DNA of 63,068 nucleotides, filler included, from Choristocarpus tenellus KU-1152 (lineage: Eukaryota; Protista; Phaeophyceae): NCBI GenBank assembly GCA_964200185.2. It is 12 parts of 12 records of this genome, joined end to end, with 100 filler letters (N's around TTAATTAATTAA, not from the genome) between each part and the next. Parts side by side here need not be neighbours in the genome. Positions count along the whole stretch, not along the records: positions 41,918 to 45,970 come from CAXNAD020016461.1; 11 more parts are not named here. The stretch is one strand, 5' to 3'. The translations under genes were made by a program, and so were the position numbers. The notes beneath the pieces are model-generated. The model was given only the letters and a program-made list of their open reading frames with translations, was not told the DNA's origin and searched no databases. Shown one piece after another: positions 5,990 to 46,070 of this stretch (within the stretch, counting starts at the first letter, position 1; every line of letters starts with the position of its first letter).

Positions 5990-8900
5990 AAATAATGCTA
6001 CGGACCCATTCCATTGGATGTGATATATTTGGGCTCCAGGGGACTAGGCGAGATGGACGGTCTTCCCTCGTATTTTCAGGAGAATTCGTACTTATCAGCG
6101 GAGGAGATGATGGAATAGAGAGTCATGGCATTGAAGCGGGGGTGAAACATTCGTTTACGCGAGAAGCGGACTGTGAGTAGGAATTCACTAGCGACTGGCT
6201 GATGAAAGTTAGGATCTCCTCACCCTGCGCTAGAGTATGGTCACGCTCATCGTGGGATACACTCCAACTGAGTTTATTGGTAGACAGTGGGAGGAGAGAC
6301 AATAACAGGGAGAAGAGGATCACTTCAGGGTAAGCCTCGAAAACACTGTGGAACAGGTGCTTTCTAAGGAGAATTTATTTATCTTAAAGGGTGCCAGCGC
6401 TCAAACCGGAAGAAGAAGTGAAGGAAAGGCAGGAAGTGATACCTTGGTTCTGGGGGCTTATGGATGTATCCAGCAAAATAATAATGGTGTGTGATTAGTA
6501 AGATTTACCAACATGAACAATCTTGCACCCCTATAAATATTTTCGGCACACCAAAAGGTCAAAGACTCCATACCTTTGTGAGCCCCAAGGTGAGAAATAC
6601 CGCCTTGATTACATCGTCATACATCACATCGACAGACTCATTCAGAATGTGATGGTGTATCCTGTCCTGCAATCAGACCACCGAATAGTATCGATGTCAG
6701 TTTGGCTCCTTAGTCGACTCACACTAAATCAAGTGACACGATCACCCAAGAGATTTATTTTGACCGCCATACCCTCAACTTACATCTTTAGTTCAGACTG
6801 GTCTACCAAATACTATTGCTAAGAAGTGCCTTGGTCTTCCAGAGGGGATGATTAAGGGTGTCGATATCGTGGCATCCGTGTACATTGCATGTATGCTGGA
6901 GACTCCCACTGAGCTTACCTCACCTCCAACACGAAATGCTGTTTCTTGAGGATGGTGAGCCAATTTGAGGTTCGAGGGAGGACGCTTGGATGCAATTACA
7001 TGCCGAACCACAAAACTACACTCTCAAAATGCCGTCAGATGGGTAATAGAGACTTGAAGAAAATGAGACCCTCCATTGTGCAGGACCTCTTTGTTGCCTA
7101 CACCTCGGCAAAGATGGAAGGAAATATTGGACCTGGGGATCAGGTTGGCTACTACTATCAACATATCAAAGGCTCCAACCTGGACGGGAGCAAATACAGT
7201 GACTCTCCATTCGTTCGAGATGAGTTTGGTAGGTTGCTAGAGAACCAGGATCTATTCTTGGACGATGGATAGGGCATTTCCCAGCACTAGTGAATGAAAA
7301 ATTGACCAAACTTAGCCCTAGTATCATCAACTCGATCAACACACTGCCCCCTTACTTGCCACTTGCTGATGAGCCTTACTATTTTGGAAGTGATAAGTGT
7401 CATACATTATCCAACCAACCAAAACGTTGTGGGCCTAGATGACCTTCCGGTGGAACTCCTAAAGCTGGGACTTGACAACTCCCATTCACTGCAGGTCTTC
7501 GACAATATTCTTGCTGTGTAATGGTCAGTGGAGGTCCCCCAGAAGTGGAAGGACGCTGTCATTAAACCATCCACAAGAAGAAAGATCGGGTTGATTACGG
7601 GAACTATAGGTACCATATCCTGATAAGATACTCCGCAAAATTATTTCATGACATATAGGAACCTATGTTGAGCAGGAGTGAATGTTTCAGAGGAGGAATG
7701 CAGATTCTGATCTAGGCAATCGACATTGACATAATGTACGTGGCTTGTGTCTTACTGGATACTCAGGCAAGAGAAGGTCCCTTTATGCATGCGATTTATT
7801 GGCCTGCAGAAGGTGTATGACTCCGTCGATTGAGACCGTCTATGGGCAGTTCTGAACCAAATTTGGGGTGCCAACAAAGGTTATTTATCATTTATCAATT
7901 CCATGTTGGAATGTGGGCTTTTGTGCAGATGCGTGTTGGGGAATGCTGACACTGCTGGTTCATTATTCAACATAGCCTCTGTAAAAAGTCTGTTGTTATC
8001 ATTCCGCTGGTCTATAATCTCTTCTTTACCGCATTGCTTACTATTGTACTGGAGAGGGTTCAGAATTGTGGAGGATTGAGGAGAATATTCCTAAGGAAGA
8101 CCTATTCTATATCAGGAGACCAAGGGTTAAACACTAGGCCTTTGGAGCGGGGGAAGGGCACCAGGAGATACCTTCACAGTTACTGAAATTGTGGTGTAGA
8201 ATGTAAGCTGATGATTCAGGCATCATGTCAATGGCTCAGGAGAGTTTGGTCAAAATGTGGCTGTAAATTGTTACAGTGTGGACGGCAATAAAACTGACCG
8301 TGTCGAAGAAGAAGATGGAGATCACCATGTACCTTCGTGTCCCCAACGGGCCAGCACAAGTGATACAGATTGAGGTTGGAGGACAGCGGTATCATCAGAC
8401 TGCCAAGTGTCTCTATGTCGGGGGTTCTGTCAGTAATGATGCTAGTCACCAAGATCCAATTTCATACCCAAAGGCTTTAGGGTGCTTCAAGGAGTACAGC
8501 AGAGAGTATATGACTGAGCAGTACCCCTTGAGCTAAATATTCGGGTGCTCAAAGTCGAAGTAGTTGAGACTCTGTTGTATGAATGTATGACGTGGACATT
8601 AAGAAAATATCACTACAACCAACTCCGTGCTCAACGCTGCAAATTCCTACAACGCTACATTAGGTTCCACAAACAAAAATGTACGGAACAAGCCATGTCG
8701 TACAAAGAAGGCCTGAAGAGGACTAGATGGGAGTGGATCGAGGCTCATATCCGCCAAACAGGCTAATATTTACAGGTTCAAAGTTGTGATTAGATGGCGA
8801 TCGCTTCCTCAAGAACCTCACGCTTCGGGAACTCAACACCTAGAAACTAGGTGGGGAGGAGGAAGGCCCAGAGAAAAAATGGTGATGGTGCCCTCCAAGA

Positions 8901-9090
8901 TGACTCCAAGGCCTTCAATATCACAGCTGATCAGCGGTTTCTCTTACCAGAAAAGTTTCGAACAGGTGGCACAGGTGTGTGAAGATTGGAGTAAAATACT
9001 CCATAGATGCTGGCATACCGCTGAGGTCAAAGTAGCCACAGCCCGTCATACGAAAGTGGACTTGGCCACCAACCACTTGATAATCATGTG
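5990..9090 (+). mobile_element. Degenerate LINE (RTE-like): APE endonuclease plus reverse transcriptase pseudogene
   Basis: Motifs in the expected order: DIFGLQGTRR, RLDYIV, SDHR, GLDDLPVELLK, VPQKWKDAVI, FIGLQKVYDSVD, *ADD (~8205), VVETLLYECMTWTL. Many stops and frameshifts. Confidence 0.85.
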
Positions 9091-10879
9091 ATGATGTGTC
9101 CTCAGCTTCTTTTATTTTCTTCTTTTCTTCTCTGAAGGAGAAGGGGTCAAGTTTTGCGATGGAGAATCGCGTGAGGCTCATAACTTGTTGAAACTTGGGA
9201 TCGAATGGATCGTGTTTTCTTGTACTGTAACAGGTTGGTAGGGAAGGGGTATCATGGTGCAATCAAACACCAGTTAATTTGTTCTGATGAACCTAGTGTC
9301 GTGCTGCTCATAAATCAGAGGTTTTTTGCTGCAAAGTAGTGGGTATTTCTTGAGACGCTCAAAAGAGATACATGCTCTGAGTAGAGACCTTGGCACCTTG
9401 TGGATAATGGTTTTTCTGTAGATGTTGAAACCCTAGCTATATTGCCATCCAGTTGTGCATCAGGCGCACTTAACGCAGAGTGAACTTAAAGTCTAAATAG
9501 GGGCAAAAACAACCAGAGAAAAAACAATAATCACCATATGAGACACGACTGATGGTTGTGATATGAAGATCGAAAAACAAGTAACAAACTTGAATCAATA
9601 TCTGGGACAACTCATATGGCAAATACTGTGCTTGTATGTTTGACAGATGTCAACTGCTCCATGCCTCCTATGCACCATGATCTTCTATAATAGTAGTTGA
9701 GGATGTTATGATGAGGTGCTAATACTGTATCGTATGAAGTACACAAAAGAGATGAGTAGCCTAGAGGATCCCTTTGCCCAGCCTAACATGCCCTTGTTGT
9801 GGATGTCTTTTAGCAGGCGTTTATCTACTGAATGCAAGAACTTACCTAGATGGTCTGGTGCCATAGTATCTGAGAGGTGGGGTGTGTGTTTAACCCAGGT
9901 TGTCCACGAATGAACGCCTGACCCCCCCTCTAGGATACGATACTTCAGATGAAGTAAGTGCATGTGGATATGTGCCCTTCCAACCAATTTTGATTCTTGA
10001 ATCTGGAACTCATAGTTAAATTTTGATTTTCTTTCTGTTTATTTTCTTGTATCTGGAACGTCGAGTGATGGAATTTGCATTTTGAAAGTTGAAGATATTT
10101 TGTAATGTTTATATTTCTTTCACAATTTAACTAGTGATGTAATGCCCTGTCACTATCATAACACGCCAATTTGACATCTCCCACACCCATAGTTGAAAAA
10201 GTAGTCAACAAGGCAATACAATTCCTTGAGAAAAGGCAACCAAGGAATATATGAAAGAAAAATAAAACAGTAGAAAAAATACAAGAAAGAAACAACGTGA
10301 AGGTATTTACAGTCCATCTCTGCTCAGCTCCAATGACAACTTGTCAAAGTCGGCCTTTAGTTCTTTCCTGTCAAACTTAATTCCATTTTCCACATGCAAG
10401 CTCCGCAAACACCAACTTTGCTTTCTTCACGAACTATAGATTGTTAATTAGCCTCGTCTTAGACTTTCATCCATTCTACTCCTCCTCAGCCATTGTAACG
10501 ACGATGGTGACCAACCAGCACGACCAATCTCTGCCATTGGTTTCCTCTCACCAACCAATGCGACCAATTTCCATGAATCCATCCACCTTCCTTCACAACA
10601 CTTTCCACCACTTTCCACTACACTTCACCATTCTCCACCACACCACAACAACCACCACTCGAAAACACTACACATTTATCCAAGAACACTCCTCCATCAC
10701 CCGCTTCAATGGTGTGCCTTTGAACTAGAGAACAACTAACCCAGCTGAACTTGCCCCCCCCTCCCCGTTCCTCCAACATCCTACTCGATTGTGAGCAATC
10801 GAAAGGGCTGTGGGTTGGAAGGTTGCTTGGAGGTTGACGTGATCTTGCCCCTGCTTGTCCTGCGCTACCACCCCTGGGT

Positions 10880-11116
10880 TTACCTTTAGTTCTGCCCCAT
10901 TCCTTCTTTCCTCATGACCCCCCTGCTACTCATTTCTCTTGACTCCTCTCCTATCGCTTCTACCTCTGAGCCATCCAGTCTTTAACTTTTCGTCTACCCT
11001 TCAATTCTTCTTTTTTTTCCCCTGCCAATACTTCAGCTTAACATAAGTATTCCCCTCTACCAATTGTCCCGCTCACAAAACTCAGATTACTTCATAAACT
11101 TCCCCATCTTGGGAAG
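10880..11116 (-). repeat. Degenerate copy of the 5' region of the DIRS/Ngaro-like element at 39616+
   Basis: 28-nt exact match AAGTTTATGAAGTAATCTGAGTTTTGTG (11074-11101 minus; 39628-39655 plus), followed by similar purine-rich sequence. Confidence 0.6.
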
Positions 11117-11688
11117 TCATTAATCCCCATGGGAGGAACTGAAACAGCACATTCAAGTCTCCACTCGCGCAATATTTCCTTGATATACTTGTGAAAATTT
11201 AGGCTGATGTTTGCATGATTTTTGAAGATGGGAGAAGAGAAGGGAATCTCACACGATTCTCTCTTACTTGAACGTGTTCGCATGATCAAAAATACAATAA
11301 TGATATTATCATAGATGGGGGTTGGTTTAGTACCCGTTGTTTCTATAAAGAATCATCAAAAAGAAACATCTACACTATATTTCCAGAAAACCCCAAGATT
11401 ACTTCTTGAGATCCAAAGTATCTGGGAGGGGGGGGGGTCTACACCAGGGTGTCCATTTGGACCAAAATCNNNNNNNNNNNNNNNNNNNNNNNNNNNNNNN
11501 NNNNNNNNNNNNNTTAATTAATTAANNNNNNNNNNNNNNNNNNNNNNNNNNNNNNNNNNNNNNNNNNNNGGACACTGAATTACATGGGTACCAACCTTGC
11601 CAATGTAGCCTACTTTCGAGGATATATTAGCTCTATCTATGCTCTATTCGTGACGTAGAGTATAACTTGATTTTACACCCAATTTTAC

Positions 11689-12889
11689 CTTTGAAAGAAT
11701 AATCCCCGCTGGCAGCTGAGACTGCCCGATCAATAGTCAGACGCCGTGCAGACACTGCTCGATCAACCATCACCACTGATTGAAACGCCTTTTTTAGTTC
11801 TTCTTCATCTTTTGAAACATGTGATCCTGTGGTGTGTGACAAATCTACCCTTGGAACTATCTCTGAGACGTGAAGAGGAGGAATGTTCTGCGTGTATTTC
11901 GTTCGTAAGCAAGGAAAGTGGTATGACAGTCGTTGGAGAACGTCATCCATTCGAAGGGAGAGCTCTCTCATCTTGTCGATTTCGAGCTGTTTCGCTGCGG
12001 CCTTGGCAGCCTCCTCGTCCTTATAACAGAGACAGCAAAACAAACGGAGGAAGGTGAATTGATTGGAGTGGTAGAACGAACGATGGGGAAGCGTAAGAAT
12101 ACATTTACAGTCCAAGAGAAAGGAACACAGACTCTAGCATATAGGTAGCCGGTGATATTTTGCTATGACCTCGAATGGAAGTATAGAGACTGAAGAGGAG
12201 TAAAATGGATCAGTACACAATCCTTGTAGGATCGGGCAGACGACATCAGCACACCACCTAAGAAGATAACTATGTAGTAGACAGTTTGGCGTTGACACAA
12301 CCCTACCTTGGCGTTTTCTGCTTCCTTATCCAAGTCCTTCCTCTCCTCAGAACTATGTCCATCTTCTGAATCTGTACCCTCCTCTGCGCTCCTACTCTCC
12401 TCAGAGTTACTGGTATCATCTGAGTTGCTGTCATCCTCTGAATCGTTTCCCTCGTCGGAACTGCTTTCCTCCTCAGAATTGCTTTCCTCCTCCGAATTGC
12501 TGTCAGAATCGGAACCGCCGTCCTCACCAGAGCTGCTATTGCTGTCTTCGGAACTGCTTTCTGTTTCGGAGGTTCCTTGATCTGGGTCGGAGTCCTCCTG
12601 CAAGATCGAGTGCCAATAGTAACAGGTCCGCGAGATCTTAGGTGTTTTCGCGGAGAACTACGACCATCGTGAAAGAAGCAACTACGCAAATGGAAGACAG
12701 AATGTGATCAGCCTACCCTTCACTGACCAGGCGTATGTCCTTTCGTGGATCTATCCTGGGTCGTTCTCAGTCGCTTTGAGAGAACCCAACCGAATAACGA
12801 AAATACGTGCATCTTGTTCTGAGGAGCGACGTGATGTTCCCCACCTCAGATTCGCTGCTCTCAGAGATCTCCGACTCAGTACTCGACAT
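11689..12889 (-). CDS. Unknown protein with Ser/Glu/Asp-rich N-terminus, 3' partial. Exons 12889-12845, 12597-12307, 12019-11689
   Basis: ATG at 12889. GT-AG junctions join in frame: MSSTESEISESSESE|EDSDPDQG...ENAK|DEEAAKAAAKQLEIDKMRELSL...YSFK. No family recognised. Confidence 0.65.
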
Positions 12890-13116
12890 TCTGTACTAGC
12901 AACTTTTTCAACGGGAAATTGCCATGGATTGGGGAGGGGAGAAAGGGGTTTTGAAAGGGGAGAAAGGGGTTTTGGGTGAATACGAAGGTGGCGTTTCTTC
13001 TAATGTTTACCCGAAGGTCCTGCCGAATTGCTCCGAGAATGGGTTGAAACAATAAAGACTAAACCTATAAATTACTCAAATATCAAGGAAAAAATTGTGC
13101 ATCCCAGTAACACTCA
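12890..13116. promoter_or_regulatory. Probable bidirectional promoter
   Basis: 227 bp separate two divergent ATGs (12889 minus, 13117 plus); the flanking sequence is CpG-rich. Confidence 0.5.
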
Positions 13117-14118
13117 ATGAAGAAGAGTGTCCATGTTGTGACTGCTTTGATCTACTCAATTGGTCAAGCGTCTGCGTTCATCTCCCTTGACATGTCAGCA
13201 ATGGTTGCAACGTCCAAGGACGCGAGAGTGGATCCTGTGGTTGAACATGCTGTGGCATGGTCCTCCACCCAGGGATTGGGCATGGTTGTTAAGGACAAAG
13301 ATGATCTTTTCACAAGCACTCATTTGCCATTCAGCCTCCTTCCATATAGTGAGTCGATTGTGCTCATTGCTCCTGGTTTCCTCAGAAGAATAAATTATGT
13401 TGGCTCATCTGCATCCCTGATCCGATGTTTTCGGTGCAGTATACATGCCATTCATCCATCCCTTGCTGAAGCAATTGACGTATTGGGTTCACTCCGTGAC
13501 AAATGATGTTTGGCTTCCTATTGCAGCTCTTCCATGCGGTGCCTTCGAACAGGCGCGGAAATGGACCCCTCTTTTCAATACCCTTGTGGATCGAGTGAGT
13601 CGTGATGGAGCCTGGCTGAAGGAGGTGTTGACAGACGTTGTGGTGAGCACAAGATGTAAGGGGGATGTGAGCCTTCTCCACTTTTGGTCTCAGCTGCTTC
13701 GATATCCCTGTAAGGCCTACGCTGCGAGGCTATCTTCCTAAGTGGTATTTCAGATGCACATAATACGGGGGGGTGCCCAGGATGTGTGAAGGTTACTTCT
13801 CTATCCTGTATATTGTTCCTCCTATGCGATCTAGTATCCTAACCGAATAGCCTGCGTCCCTGCGCAATTCTCAGAGTCTCCAAAAATCTTTCCTAGCCAA
13901 TCCTATGGTTCTAGGTAGTCCTTCTGTGATTCCTTACAATCGCATTCGACTTGAATATGTGGCAGGTGGGCGATGAGTTTACAGCAGAACTCATGCGCAT
14001 ACATGACATTATCCAGGCAGAGGGTGGACCACGGCAGTCTGTCTGCCTTGGGATCAACCGATCCGACTACATGCTGCACGCCCCGAAAGAAGAAGGCATC
14101 ACTCCGCACCTTCTTCAG
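13117..14118 (+). CDS. GSS: Glutathione synthetase (eukaryotic type), 5' part. Exons 13117-13348, 13527-13642, 13966-14118
   Basis: Spliced product contains THLPFSLLPY.LP..AFEQA..WTPLFNTLVDRVSRD..WL..VL..V..GDEFT..L and LGINRSDYM, typical of eukaryotic GSS. GT-AG junctions are phase-compatible. Confidence 0.92.
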
Positions 14119-16069
14119 GTATGCTACCTCTGCAGGTTGGGTTAAAGATGCGTCACATCGTGCTGTACGGCAGTGAAAATAGCGTAACTCTCCCCTAAGC
14201 AAGTAGCTTATCCTCAAGTTATGAATTGTCTGGTGATTATGGCTTCCTTCATGCTACCTTACCCTCCCCGACCCCCCCCTCTACTTGTCATACTTTCTTT
14301 CTTTTCTTTTTTTCATCGTTTTTTTGGTTNNNNNNNNNNNNNNNNNNNNNNNNNNNNNNNNNNNNNNNNNNNNTTAATTAATTAANNNNNNNNNNNNNNN
14401 NNNNNNNNNNNNNNNNNNNNNNNNNNNNNCCAAGATACTTTTTGAGTGCTCAAAAATCGCGACATGAAAAAATTGACCCCAAATGGACAGTCGCCACGCC
14501 CTTCCGGATACTTTGAGTCCCTTAACCGGGCGTAGCTCATGACTGTACAGCAGTTGCAGCTAACGCAATATCAGACACACAAAACGGCGAATGCTTGTAT
14601 TTATCTTCAGACATCCCCTACCTTAAGTACTCCCTCTAACCCAATAATTTTACCCATCATTATTGAGAGGTTGAGAGGACAGATGTCCCAGAAGGTGACT
14701 TGTTGATCCTAGAAGAGACGTAGCCTGTGATGCTTTCAATTATATGGAAACAAAACTAGAAATGACTAACCCAAATTCCACATGGAATTTGGGCACGTCG
14801 TTTCTAAAGGGTTCACAAAAATATAGACACCAACACAAAACCATTCAAATAAAGTAGGGTAGCGAGATTGAAGGTTTAAGTTTTAAGATAGGATATTGAT
14901 GGTTCGGTATAGAATCAGGAAGGTTTTTAAGTTGTGGATGTAGATTAAGGAACATATCTCCATGTAATACCTCCCTGTGAAATAATTGTTTGGGTTTATG
15001 CGGTTGGGTTATTATTTTTTGGATATCAGGTGTGTGTTACGGTTAGAAAATGTGATCGAGAGAAAGTCTATTGTATTGCTGAGGTGGTTGGGTGGGCGAT
15101 CTTCATCCTCGCACGCATCATATATATGTGTGTTGTTGGCGTAGGGTCGTTGAACTGGATGATCTTTTGCAGTATTGTTACACACATGTTGATTTTAGTA
15201 AGCCGAAAACGCAGTCCAGAAGTCCGTTGACACATTAATCCTTTGTTCATCTGATATGTAAGCAGGGGGTGTCTCCACCAATAGCTAAGTTGTTACTAAG
15301 GAAAGGGGAGGATGCATGCGTGAAGCAAACACACTCTTGTAAAATCAAAACCACCATCAACACTCACTGTGGATAAGCTATGGCTTGATCAGAGCCGCAA
15401 GACAAGGGATTCATTAAGGATGGGGTGACAGGTGCGATTTTGCGTCTTGTTTTGAAATAAATATAGCAGTAACTGTTCCTACTATATTATGCTGAATGTG
15501 AACGTTTCCTCATATCTTCGAATATATCTATATATTTGGTGTTGTGATTCTGTAGGTGTCGATTTTTCAAGCAATTCCCCCTTAGAGACCTCTTCAAGAA
15601 ATGTTTGATAATGTTTGGGAACATATTATTTTTCTCACACTTTTTCCAAGACCTTTTTCGAATTGATTGATTTTCGAACCATTTATTCATTTTCGGAACA
15701 TTTCCTCTCATTTTTCCTTGACCTTTAGAGGGCAAGTTTGACATTACGTTATTATGTACTTATTACAACTGCCGGTACCCTTGTTTGCATGCAGGTGATA
15801 AGAAGTATTCGAATTTCGTGGTAATTCACAAGCTCCTTCCAGTTCCTTATCCTTTCTTCCTCCTTCCAAGGTTGTTCAGCCAGCACGTAATTCTCCTCAA
15901 CGCAAGTTGTAGGTTCGAGCTAGAGATTGGATCACTGGGAGTGGGATTGACTTTTGTGGCAGATGTATGGAAGGTGGATTGATGTGTTTGGGACGCGTGA
16001 AAAAAGTTCGTATTGAGGCTAAGACTAAGGAGGAGATCTATTTTCGTTTGTGAGATGGATATATGATCG

Positions 16070-41817: not shown

Positions 41818-42429
41818 NNNNNNNNNNNNNNNNNNNNNNNNNNNNNNNNNNNNNNNNNNNNTTAATTAATTAANNNNNNNNNNNNNNNNNNNNNNNNNNN
41901 NNNNNNNNNNNNNNNNNCTGGCGGCAATGATTTCATTTGATCGTCGTGCACATGTATGCCCTGCGTTGGATTGCTTGCTTGAATAATTAGTGTGGTCGGT
42001 GGAGTCATTTGACTGTCGATGGTGGAGGTGGTAGGAAAAAATAGTATGTCAAAGCAGTTTCTTTCGTGGCGGCGTTTCATCATGAGAAGAAATGATATTT
42101 TCCCATATTATTAAATTGTTTATCAGTCATTGCTATCGTCGCCAAGTAGAAGAAGAAGCTGTGCAAATTACCTTGGGAGGTTGTGCTATTTGTTAGTAGT
42201 GAAGATAAGAAGGTGTGAAGCCTCACACGACCCCCTTTGCTGAAATTGATCACATGGTTGAAATTAGAAGAGTGACCTTTGTCGGGGCTCTTCTCATTGC
42301 TTGTTTTATTATTTTTTGTGCTTTCTACAGAACTCAACAATTAAATCAAAGTAGTTGAATTCAAATCAACAAAACCTATACATATTCCATTCATAATTCT
42401 GATGTACGTTCTCATTAGTTACATCACAT

Positions 42430-43551
42430 GGACTTAATCAAAATAACTATCTCTCATACACAAAATAAGGTACACCTCACTATTGTCCTATTTTGCACTC
42501 TCTCCCATGAGAATGCAGGCAATGAAAGAGTTGCTGGAACTCTCAAACCTAAAACATCTTATATATACCTGTACTGTCCCATTCTGCACACTTCCACATG
42601 AAAAATGGAATTATAAGACGTCGGATTGGTTCAATTCTCACACACATCACATTTATCTTGTCAACGCAATAAAAGAACACTGATTACTTGAACTCAAACA
42701 CACGTCATTCATCTAGTCAACACAGTGATGTACAATCGCGTCCCATGATGACCCCTCGATTAGTTTATGATTACAAATTTGAACCAGCCCCCTTTTGCTC
42801 TTTCTCTTGTTGGACGTAGCACTCACTCCCCCAGGCTTGACGCCTATCATAATTGAATGCCTTGTACATCCTCTTGTTAGTGAAGTCCTTTGCTAACAAC
42901 CTTCCTCGCCAGGGTGCCTCTGATATGGAAGATGGTTCTTGATGGTCTGGAGTAGACACTATTTACTTCCCAGACTTACAAGTCTTGTACAGGCAGCCCT
43001 TTGCTGACAAACTTCCTCTGGTTTTCTTTTCTGGTTCCAACCCTGGTCTAGCTAATTCCTCCGCTGTTAAGATGGTGTCGCTCTCCTCTGGCGACAAACG
43101 ATAAGGTTTCCTTTTTACCTCCACAGTTGTAGCATATTCCTTCAAAAGAACAAGGACCAATATGCTTGATCAGTCCAGAGTTTAAACATCGTCTGTTGGT
43201 CCTGATCTCGTCTCTGGTAGGGGATCTTGTTGTAATATGGTCCGTACGTTGACCAGTTGTACCTTGGCCGCCTCATCCGCTGACCTTCTGTGTTCTCTTC
43301 CACGAGTCTATGGTCCCAGCGGCTAGAGTGCTCTCAGGCTCCCCACGGTTAGCTCCTCCTTTCCTTTCTGGTGGAGGCTTAGCTACTGCTCCTGCTAATG
43401 TCCTGCTCCCCTAGTGGCAGGTACAACAGCAATTGCTTTTCTCATTCCGTAAGCAAGAAACTTGGGGTCTCCAATCGATGGGCGAGCCCCCTTCAGGGAC
43501 AAGTGTTGTGACGACTGCACTAGGTCCATAGGCAGATTCTTGTGGCTCAGA

Positions 43552-43603
<52 letters not shown>

Positions 43604-43850
43604 TGGCTGAGGCTCAGGATTGCAGCTCCAGCTGCATTGCCTCGATTAACTCTGTCATGTTGTCCCAGTGCCCCACTGTTCAATATTCGGAATGGCATAC
43701 CAGGTACCCAAAGTATCTTCTTGACCTCCTGTTCTTGTTTGTTACCGATTGTACCTTATCTCATGTCTCCCTAGCCTCCAGTTTCCATTTGTGTCAAAGG
43801 TGCAGGTCCACTTTGTTGGGATGACGATGATGATACTATTCTGACAGAAG
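42430..43850 (-). mobile_element. Decayed LTR-retrotransposon (Copia-like) remnant
   Basis: QAWGSECYV (integrase C-terminal-like) and FHF...VQNGTVQV (RNase H end-like) on the minus strand; many stops. Confidence 0.35.
43546..43603 (+). repeat. (CTCAGG)n hexamer repeat
   Basis: About 9 tandem units; reads (EP)n on the minus strand. Confidence 0.9.
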
Positions 43851-44237
43851 TTACCACTGAGCGCATATAAGTATTGACATTATATGATGATCGACCTCTT
43901 TGTACGAATATCTCAGTCGTGCCCGAGATATAGTTTGTTGCGATCTGCCCCCCCCCCCCACCCTGTCAGATACGCCGATCTGCATTTATCTATTTGCTCA
44001 GGCAGGTTGTTGGACTTGCAACACATCGCAGTGGGCGAACGGGGCAAGGGGTAGGTGTGAAGCGGTCGCGGGACACACGCGGCAGGCAGTAGTGAGCAAC
44101 ATGTTGCTGTCGACAGAAAGACCACGAGGGATAAAAAAGATCAACAGCGAAAAGATCAACAATGGACTAACTGACGATGAACCTAACAAAGGAAACTCGG
44201 TAACAACTTGGTAGATCAGAAGAGTCATCAGGCGATC

Positions 44238-44585
44238 ATGGAACAAGGACAACACTCCATCACCCACCGTTGGCAATTAGCCTCTCTTCTGCTTGGTTGA
44301 ACTCCATGTAGACACGCATCATGAAAGCGCGTTTGGGATCAAACTCTCTCTTCAACACCGTTATTCTATGGTTTCCGTCCAGTGTTCATCCTTGAATGGC
44401 AAGCGAAACTCGGCAACATCACATGCACGGAGATGGTGCGTCCACTGAGCGAGTGTGGCCTTGCGCGCGTCAGCAAGTCCATTCGAGAAAAAGGCTGGCT
44501 GGAGCTATTTGCTCCGTCTGTCATCATCCAACGAGACTGCTTCGGCAAGCGCAATTCCGGCGGTGAGCTGGTCCCCATTACCTAA
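44238..44585 (+). pseudogene. Truncated ParB/Srx N-terminal-like ORF (left copy, two in-frame TGA)
   Basis: ATG at 44238 is in frame with KRVWDQTL...KLGNITCTEMVRPLSECGLARVSKSIREKGWLELFAPSV. Confidence 0.5.
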
Positions 44586-44852
44586 ACAGTCTCGCTGGAA
44601 TACGACAGACGGAGCAAACTGCTCCAGCCAGCCTTTTTCACGGATAGACTTGCTGACGCGCGCAAGGCCACGCTCGCTCAGGGGACGCACCATCTCCGTG
44701 CATGTGATGTTGCCGAGTTTCGTCCGGTACATGCCGAGGTAGTGATGTTCTAGGAGCGAGGACATGCCCTTCAGATTGCTGTCCCACGTTCTCGATCTGT
44801 GGGCAGCACCATTGGCGGGCGGATGGGCTGTTGTTGAGCGAATGCTGGACAT
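44505..44852 (-). pseudogene. Truncated ParB/Srx N-terminal-like ORF (right copy)
   Basis: GCCATG at 44852. MSSIRS...RTWDSNL...KLGNITCTEMVRPLSERGLARVSKSIREKGWLEQFAPSVV fits R......L..L..SI...G.L.P..V. Confidence 0.55.
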
Positions 44853-45189
44853 GGCGAAGGTTGGGAGGGTGTGACGGGGATCGATAAATAACAGGTGCGC
44901 GTAGTATGTACGGAGGGGAATGAATTGAAATGAGGACTGAGGGATGGGAAGTGCTGCTTTATTTAATCTGGTCGGTCGGTCCTCAAAACTCAGATTTGTC
45001 TTTCCGTTGACAATTGTGTTACAAGAAATACGAATATTGAACAGCATACGATTTAATATTAGAAAGAGACAGAGAGTAACAGTTTTTTGTGAACTTTTTG
45101 TTTCGTACGTTTCAAACGTATTGAATCAACGAAGGATGTGGTTTGTACTTTTATTTGTTGATGTAAATATTAGATTATTATTATTATTT

Positions 45190-45745
45190 CATAAAAACCC
45201 TAACACACGTATTTTGGGTCTTCAAGGGTTTAGAAGATCAGATCAGATCTCTAAAACTCTAGATCCGCTTTTTTGTCGTCTTTAGTATTCTAAAGTCGCC
45301 AAAAAGCGGTTTTACTCTTTAAATAAATTGTGGGTACCAGTTGGAAGTGACCTTTTAGTTTCTAAAAATTGGAAACGTGTGAGACCCATAAAGTGCGTGC
45401 CTTGTATTTTCAAAAATTGTAAGAACGGTTATTACTGGATTTACTATTCCTAAAACTCCTACTGCACGTGTTTTGGGTGTTTAGGGTTTAGGGGACCAGA
45501 TCGGATCCCGTAAACCCAATGAACCGCATTTTGTCGTCTCTACTATTTTAAGAATGCAAATATCCAACAGTTGAAGATTTTGTACTTCAAAAAATTAGAG
45601 GGTGCCAGTTTTTTTCCGACCTTTTGGTTTCTGAACATTGGAAACGTACAAGATCAATGAAGTATGTGCTTTGTATATTAAAAAATTGTAAGTACGGATA
45701 TAATCGGATTTACAACTTCCAAAGACCGTAATGCACGGATTTTCA
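45190..45745 (+). repeat. Diverged ~265-bp tandem duplication (2 copies plus a partial third)
   Basis: Blocks CACGT.TTTTGGGT, TTTTGTCGTCT, GACCTTTT.GTTTCT..A.ATTGGAAACGT and AAAAATTGTAAG.ACGG each recur about 260-270 bp apart. Confidence 0.8.
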
Positions 45746-46070
45746 GGATCATGGATCTCAGGGTTAGCCCACGGATCGCCCGGAGCTCAAACATCGTTCA
45801 TACGCCTGGCTTCGAATCTCATCACTCCTAGACCTTCTCACTGCCCAAAACCGCCTGTTGCCCGAAAACACCATGACAAGTCCAACAACTTGCCCAAGAA
45901 AATAGATAAATGCAGATCGGCGTATCTGACAGGGTGGGGGTGGGGAGGCAGATCGCAACAAACGATATCTNNNNNNNNNNNNNNNNNNNNNNNNNNNNNN
46001 NNNNNNNNNNNNNNTTAATTAATTAANNNNNNNNNNNNNNNNNNNNNNNNNNNNNNNNNNNNNNNNNNNN

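Follow-up and report, generated by a model that had tools for sequence, protein, structure and literature searches.

Choristocarpus tenellus KU-1152, a brown alga (Phaeophyceae; assembly GCA_964200185.2), carries in its genome the remains of what appears to be a giant DNA transposon. The DNA analysed here, hereafter the window, is 63,068 nucleotides long and consists of 12 parts of that assembly joined end to end; the locus in question lies in the piece at positions 41918–45970, which derives from CAXNAD020016461.1. Our reading, to which we give a probability of roughly 0.7, is that positions 44028–45877 are a dead fragment of a high-copy transposon of the Sola1 type with an accessory gene for a protein resembling ParB and sulfiredoxin (ParB/Srx-like), and that this accessory gene is a single gene with a 138-nt insert in it. 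The original prediction, made from the sequence of the window, had seen a mobile element flanked by terminal inverted repeats (TIRs) with two convergent ParB-like genes, and had taken it for an element type hitherto undescribed in eukaryotes. Accessory genes with a ParB domain had, however, already been reported in 2025 from giant DNA transposons of algae (PMC12477816; 10.1101/2025.02.11.637652). The locus joins this group, whose accessory proteins were recognised only in that year, as a new example of a known transposon cargo and not as a new kind of element.

The accessory gene reads along the minus strand, and its open reading frame (ORF) starts at the ATG at 44852, exactly where it had been predicted to start. 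Its closest relatives in a word search are proteins of Choristocarpus tenellus itself, with 83% and 71% identity. Three paralogous contigs of this species (L003, L004 and L010) are collinear with the minus strand of the window from ~45759 to 44544, the window region being 82% identical to L003 1054–2284, and all three then go straight from the equivalent of 44544 to that of 44405 and on through 44028, without any counterpart of 44406–44543. Since the three contigs are collinear and lack this segment, the window holds a single minus-strand gene interrupted by an insert. Reads of the same organism were examined as short Logan contigs from four runs, none of which spans the whole structure, and they include the joints 44405 to 44559 and 44381 to 44547 that are expected of copies without the insert; none of the RNA runs contains the stretch. 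The insert is 90% identical to 44578–44722 and has at each end one copy of an 8-nt direct repeat, CGCTTGCC in the minus-strand reading (44551–44544 and 44405–44398), an octamer that is single in L003. As judged from these sequence comparisons, the presumed second convergent gene is a 138-nt inverted piece of the gene family, and a palindrome inside one gene had been mistaken for two inverted paralogues.

On the plus strand, the ORF that was thought to begin at ATG 44238 has two in-frame stops, and the sole open plus-strand frame at this place is a 67-codon ORF with a GTG start (44382–44585). The R.WD..L motif by which the N-terminus of the plus-strand product had been likened to that of its minus-strand partner is not homologous, because the DNA similarity between the two arms begins only at the KLGN codons; the supposed N-terminus with its R.WD..L lies within 44263–44385, where the plus strand simply runs antisense to the continuation of the true gene. 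The minus-strand gene had also been regarded as cut off at the point where the two genes meet and as having lost its G-x-x-R motif through this truncation, but it resumes at 44405 beyond the insert, and the motif is encoded there as DGNHR (44379–44365, minus strand).

The insert and its source sequence form the inner of two nested inverted repeat pairs in the piece. The inner pair (44404–44548 and 44578–44722) is 145 nt long and differs at 14 positions, ten of which are third codon positions of the shared frame, where chance would predict about five of the 14; the earlier count of 13 differences over 142 nt, nine of them in third positions, holds up in essence. This bias does reflect coding constraint in the gene family. 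At several sites the inverted fragment matches L003 against the window's own gene, and together with the synonymous bias this argues that the two inner arms descend from different copies of the element, which probably diverged while still coding. The differences would then have arisen while both source genes evolved as coding genes in separate element copies, and the simplest route by which the 138-nt piece may have been joined to the gene is template switching or DNA repair involving copies in opposite orientation, with duplication of the 8 nt.

The gene of the window copy is destroyed three times over, by the insert, by a nonsense change (CGA to TGA at 44388–44386, with CGA in L003) and by the loss of everything from exon 2 onward. 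Exon 2 is found at L003 2672–2815, in L004 and in L002, and is joined to exon 1 in the Sphacelaria protein P0010; in the window, homology to L003 breaks off at 44028, some 18 nt short of the exon 2 start, and one of the Logan contigs (record 23) diverges at the same position. On the other side the homology ends at 45878, where a transposase-like ORF would start. What the window retains of the parent is the upstream region with its tandem repeats and, from the accessory gene, exon 1 together with intron 1. Because of the TGA stop and the loss of exon 2 the gene is, by its sequence, a pseudogene, and the view of the locus as the defective remainder of a larger mobile element is supported, with exon 1 as the only accessory-gene exon left and the transposase gone.

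The protein family to which the accessory gene belongs escapes Pfam. At E ≤ 10 Pfam returned nothing for the window ORFs and their closest relatives except chance-level RHS_N and AbiEi_3_N, and a language-model atlas search with the window peptide gave no usable match. An exhaustive profile search (E ≤ 1e-3; cluster representatives at 50% identity) nonetheless recovered at least 133 family clusters, with named members from Cladosiphon, Pylaiella, Sphacelaria, Ectocarpus, Ascophyllum and Choristocarpus, so that the family spans the Phaeophyceae including the early-branching Choristocarpus. The family alignment comprises 117 sequences, P0105 having been excluded as a tandem-repeat protein (567 aa, 10 matched stretches). 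Near-invariant in it are the G of a GW pair and the D, G, H and R of DGNHR, a motif that corresponds to the conserved G-x-x-R type nucleotide-binding loop of the ParB/Srx superfamily and that the window also encodes. The structure was modelled with AlphaFold2 on P0010, which is ~43–55% identical to the window peptide. With the 117-sequence alignment the predicted local distance difference test score (pLDDT) was 82, and above 90 across the domain; an alignment of only eight sequences gave a pLDDT of 37 and an unusable model.

Searching the Protein Data Bank (PDB) with Foldseek, we found that all of the top 50 matches to the P0010 model were ParB/Srx structures, among them PadC (E 6.5e-5), Noc, ParB, KorB, sulfiredoxin (TMt 0.70), SbnI and Atu1540. 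The all-against-all structural alignment of VIA-align agrees, with ParB/Srx structures in all of the top eight places (Z 10.3–6.9) before a drop to 4.4, and an ESM-Atlas shape search returned ParB_N and DUF6551 clusters as well as phage ParB-methylase proteins. Among the 117 members the sub-threshold matches to hidden Markov models (HMMs) recur within the same circle: DGQHR TIGR03187 19 times, DGQHR_dnd_1 and GmrSD_N ten times each, DndB four times, ddrB-ParB three times and DpdB twice; SbnI also appears, at E 0.88, in a sequence-profile search of the PDB. The tentative ParB/Srx call of the original prediction therefore stands for the family, being supported by the predicted fold, the invariant DGNHR and the sub-threshold DGQHR, DndB and GmrSD_N matches, and the fold search that had been proposed as a check comes out in its favour on the relative P0010. 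In the profile searches, matches to the ParB clan recur below threshold and none reaches a curated one. The model thus supports a ParB/Srx fold for the N-terminal domain.

The nearest branch of this fold is the DGxHR (DndB/DGQHR-like) one and not the partition ParBs. The family shares with DndB and DpdB, both of which are tied to DNA modification, a D-G-x-H-R motif after the central strand, and these proteins are its commonest sub-threshold HMM matches; it differs from them in having DGNHR rather than DGQHR, in reaching no curated cut-off, in its eukaryotic host, its introns and its other partner domains. With ParB, Noc, KorB, PadC and sulfiredoxin it has the N-terminal fold in common (VIA Z 10.3–8.5 over 87–101 residues, rmsd 2.4–3.2; Foldseek probability 1.00), but identity is only 13–16%, neither a helix-turn-helix (HTH) nor a C-terminal dimerisation domain was detected (no HTH_ParB or ParB_C match), no ParA partner was found in the fetched loci, and the motif is DGNHR rather than GERRxR. 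The helices that follow the ParB-like domain have weak, generic structural matches only (Z ≤ 4.4).

Full-length relatives are multi-exon genes for proteins of ~850 aa, such as P0084 of Cladosiphon (843 aa), which is collinear with the Ectocarpus locus L008. In these the ParB-like domain is followed by a helical region (exon 2), then by a linker that is acidic and rich in Cys, and finally by a C-terminal region, which is encoded at 9206–10840 in L008. For residues 560–843 of P0084 all 30 of 30 language-model neighbours are N6_N4_Mtase clusters, with scores of 0.90–0.92. This provides a lead, and only a lead, towards an N6/N4 DNA methyltransferase. A Pfam search of the C-terminal exons of L008 and L007 gave no match, and a word search with the P0084 C-terminus found itself alone; the region may be a divergent or inactivated methyltransferase-like domain.

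The link to Sola1 comes from the neighbourhood of the family members. In three loci, namely L003 of Choristocarpus, L002, and L009 of Sphacelaria, a divergent ORF lies a few hundred bases upstream of the ParB-like gene on the opposite strand. By eye, this ORF shares ~32 of 72 positions with the N-terminus of the Sola1-1_Ec32 transposase, including CC..C, LE.EQ, DRKRFV, GSM.A.G.PVC and CKGT, and in L009 there is a second collinear transposase-like segment, PH.K.K..G.FM.C..CTL, also seen by eye. The catalytic domain of a Sola1-type DDD transposase was not recovered in L002, L003 or L009. Sola1-1_Ec32 itself is a 21.5-kb element of Ectocarpus with a 282-bp imperfect TIR and a 4-bp target site duplication (TSD), described in Genome Biology in 2025 (PMC12477816). 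On the strand opposite its transposase it carries an accessory gene whose 1104-aa product combines a ParB-like domain with an N4C/N6A DNA methyltransferase domain (PMC12477816); Supplementary Material 3 of that paper enters it as an 'additional Ectocarpus specific gene'. In our three loci, too, the ParB-like gene and the transposase-like ORF lie on opposite strands, and like Sola1-1_Ec32 the family is high in copy number, mostly fragmentary and found in brown algae. Unlike Sola1-1_Ec32, the window copy lacks a transposase and keeps of the accessory gene only exon 1, and its flanking repeat of at least 93 bp, which starts AGATAT, is unlike the 282-bp TIR (AACCG...CGGTT). Against the label of an Ectocarpus-specific gene stands the occurrence of the DGNHR family in at least six brown-algal genera, the accessory proteins being compared by their arrangement only; if the accessory protein of Sola1-1_Ec32 is a member of the DGNHR family, that label is too narrow.

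A second published parallel, which we compare by description only, is PAG3 of the Plavaka elements of the red alga Bostrychia moritziana, an accessory gene with a ParB domain and a 2-oxoglutarate (2OG) oxygenase that sits beside repeat arrays (bioRxiv preprint 10.1101/2025.02.11.637652). It resembles the present family in its N-terminal ParB-like domain, in being carried as accessory cargo by a giant DNA transposon and in the adjacent repeat arrays, and its product has been proposed to bind its own element. It differs in its partner domain, a 2OG-dependent oxygenase, and in its superfamily (Plavaka/EnSpm). A self-binding or marking role for ParB-domain accessory proteins has been proposed in both 2025 papers (PMC12477816; 10.1101/2025.02.11.637652). 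Arguing from these papers and from the fold, we suggest by analogy that the intact protein would bind the element's own DNA through its ParB-like domain, perhaps at the tandem repeats, and thereby mark or regulate the element. Given the fold, the spread of the family and its repeated head-to-head pairing with a Sola1-transposase-like ORF, brown algae offer a place to test the idea of a transposon that binds its own DNA and marks it.

The element is abundant in the reads. In run X1 alone, 5738 contigs fall on the 4 kb of the piece at ≥90% identity, and since one perfectly matching contig has a depth of 17, against a summed depth of ~6,500–16,000 over the ParB exon, the numbers suggest, as a rough inference, hundreds of copy equivalents in Choristocarpus. 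The gene fragment is flanked by the outer of the two inverted repeat pairs, with arms of 93–94 nt that are ~93% identical (43926–44018 and 45877–45970). These inverted repeats are real, as had been predicted, but as termini of an element they are candidates only: the right arm ends at the edge of the piece, and one copy in run X3 crosses the outer edge of the left arm at 43926. The outer arms were not found in any of the fetched loci or in JGI metagenome contigs. Both L003 breakpoints (44028 and 45878) are no more than 10 nt away from the points where the arms end on their inner side, and two Logan contigs (records 3 and 12) span the junction of the left arm with the gene fragment at ~91% identity, which implies that the composite exists in more than one diverged copy. 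The recurrent left junction fits an amplified deletion derivative, and the flanking 93-bp repeats may be the ends of such a non-autonomous derivative, itself amplified.

Several observations weigh against the Sola1 reading. The window has no transposase sequence, six of the nine related loci are without an adjacent transposase-like ORF, the transposase likeness of the others was judged by eye, and orthology to the 1104-aa accessory protein of Sola1-1_Ec32 is inferred from arrangement alone. The fold model was made from the Sphacelaria protein P0010 and not from the window gene, and no Pfam or NCBIfam model, ParB_N (PF02195) included, passes its cut-off for any family member. Sequence profiles run against the PDB pointed to EF-Ts, tautomerase and phycocyanin-beta on a DGNKR-like string, matches that we regard as spurious, the fold searches giving ParB/Srx. 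The C-terminal region of P0084 and L008 has no Pfam (E ≤ 10) or PDB sequence match and stays below the PF01555 threshold, nor is a canonical DPPY or FxGxG to be seen by eye (P0084 has TAESDG and L008 TADKDG). As regards the flanks, three points advise caution about the amplified derivative: Logan record 22 (run X3, 43863–43995) is the diverged copy that runs across 43926, the contig end cuts the right arm and hides both the length of the repeat and any TSD, and the left flank (41918–42158 plus 43846–43925) is a more abundant repeat with a nested insertion of ~1.69 kb.

In the strongest alternative, the 93-bp arms are two oppositely oriented copies of a different abundant repeat ('unit A': 41918–42158 plus 43846–44027) that has disrupted a Sola1 copy from both sides, by interruption or rearrangement, and the gene fragment would be debris between nested repeats. 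Unit A extends to the left of 43926 elsewhere (record 22), it carries the nested insertion, and its read depth exceeds that of the gene region several-fold (summed depth in run X1 ~70,000–107,000 over the left flank against 6,500–16,000); L003, L004 and L010 are without such a repeat at the matching places, and a derivative that keeps only a central piece of its parent requires two deletions. The closeness of both L003 breakpoints to the inner ends of the arms and the recurrence of the left junction speak against debris and would suit amplification of the entire unit. We rate this alternative as a serious one that falls somewhat short of even odds. That the ParB-like genes are host or virus-derived genes that merely lie near transposons seems quite unlikely. 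P0084 and the Ectocarpus locus L008 are indeed annotated as multi-exon genes, and the flanks fetched for them show no transposase-like ORF next to the gene; the phage ParB-methylase proteins returned by the shape search could be read in the same way, but the copy equivalents in Choristocarpus number roughly hundreds, many copies are fragmentary with stops, three taxa share the divergent arrangement of the gene with a Sola1-transposase-like ORF, and the published architecture of Sola1-1_Ec32 matches.

An assembly artefact, made up of a fold-back at the contig end and a chimeric inner palindrome, would account for the position of the right arm exactly at the contig end in an extremely repetitive genome, and one contig of run X2 joins 43954 to 45934 on opposite strands. 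A simple fold-back of a single molecule would not leave differences between the arms at 7 of 94 positions in the outer and 14 of 145 in the inner pair, and the junctions of the insert are clean, with an 8-nt duplication; we consider this explanation very unlikely, though with short Logan contigs as the reads it keeps some weight for the outer repeat. Least credible of all, and close to negligible in our view, is the compact ~2-kb element of an undescribed transposon class, with 93-bp TIRs and two truncated convergent ParB-like paralogues. Both inverted repeat pairs and the third-position bias do exist, and the left junction does recur in diverged copies, but the plus-strand 'gene' has no homology outside 44404–44548 and carries stops upstream of it, the minus-strand gene continues through the presumed meeting point as L003, L004 and L010 attest, and ParB-domain cargo of algal TIR transposons has already been published. 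The dead fragment of a Sola1-type transposon with one interrupted accessory gene thus remains our preferred reading, and the features on which it is based are collected in the table.

Table. Features of the piece at positions 41918–45970, in window coordinates
Feature	Position	Strand	Remarks
Nested insertion, ~1.69 kb, outside the element	42159..43850		Joints 42150/42159/42160 to 43846/43852/43857 in four of four runs
Outer inverted repeat, left arm	43926..44018		Outer limit fixed only by the right-arm cut-off
Intron 1 remnant	44028..44262	-	Homology to full-type copies (L003 to 2653, L004 to 2650, L010 to 1883) ends at 44028
Exon 1, second part	44263..44405	-	Reads QG*TLDGNHRITVLKREFDPKRAFMMRVYMEFNQAEERLIANG; TGA 44388-44386; DGNHR 44379-44365
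8-nt direct repeat CGCTTGCC, distal copy	44398..44405	-	Proximal copy at 44544-44551; once in L003
138-nt inverted copy of the KLGNITC...QRDC gene segment	44406..44543	+	Absent from L003, L004 and L010; skipped by read joints
First part of exon 1 (ParB/Srx-like accessory gene)	44544..44852	-	ATG 44852 through ...LTAGIALA; 83% identical to Choristocarpus tenellus P0001; collinear with L003 1975-2284
Region upstream of the gene	44853..45876		In L003 intergenic, from the gene to the divergent transposase-like ORF
Outer inverted repeat, right arm	45877..45970		Truncated by the contig end; L003 homology ends at 45878

The region upstream of the gene contains a tandem repeat of about two units of 258–269 bp (~45181–45798), which has its counterpart in L003 (1070–1745, 2.5 units with a period of 269 bp) and is absent from L002 and L009. 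It is possible that this repeat is a binding array for the ParB-like protein. The repeat units hold short palindromes (e.g. L003 1229–1294) and two TTTAGGG-like heptamers (window 45479–45493). One may go further and imagine the ~2-kb unit as a mobilisable non-autonomous Sola1 derivative that keeps the 269-bp array, just that portion of its parent on which the ParB-like protein would act, and the DGNHR ParB-like/methyltransferase-like protein as a pan-brown-algal rather than Ectocarpus-specific self-marking factor that has been in place since Choristocarpus, the earliest-branching lineage, with a methyltransferase that is possibly inactivated; this is a doubtful proposition, though one that we would not dismiss.

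The nested insertion in the left flank, which other copies of the surrounding repeat lack, is probably a separate small transposon or a solo long terminal repeat (LTR); it starts with CTGTGCA and ends with CTGACAG, and (A)GAAG is duplicated at its ends. Many other copies diverge past 43840. Within the insertion there is a (GGCTCA)12 microsatellite (43544–43618), which the overlapping mechanical ORFs translate into (EP)n or (LS)n. In the wider surroundings of the family, genes for reverse transcriptase and RNase H lie within 10 kb of members in L001 (11476–12339) and L011 (12083–12292 and 19763–20221), two large ENA contigs with repeat-rich neighbourhoods.

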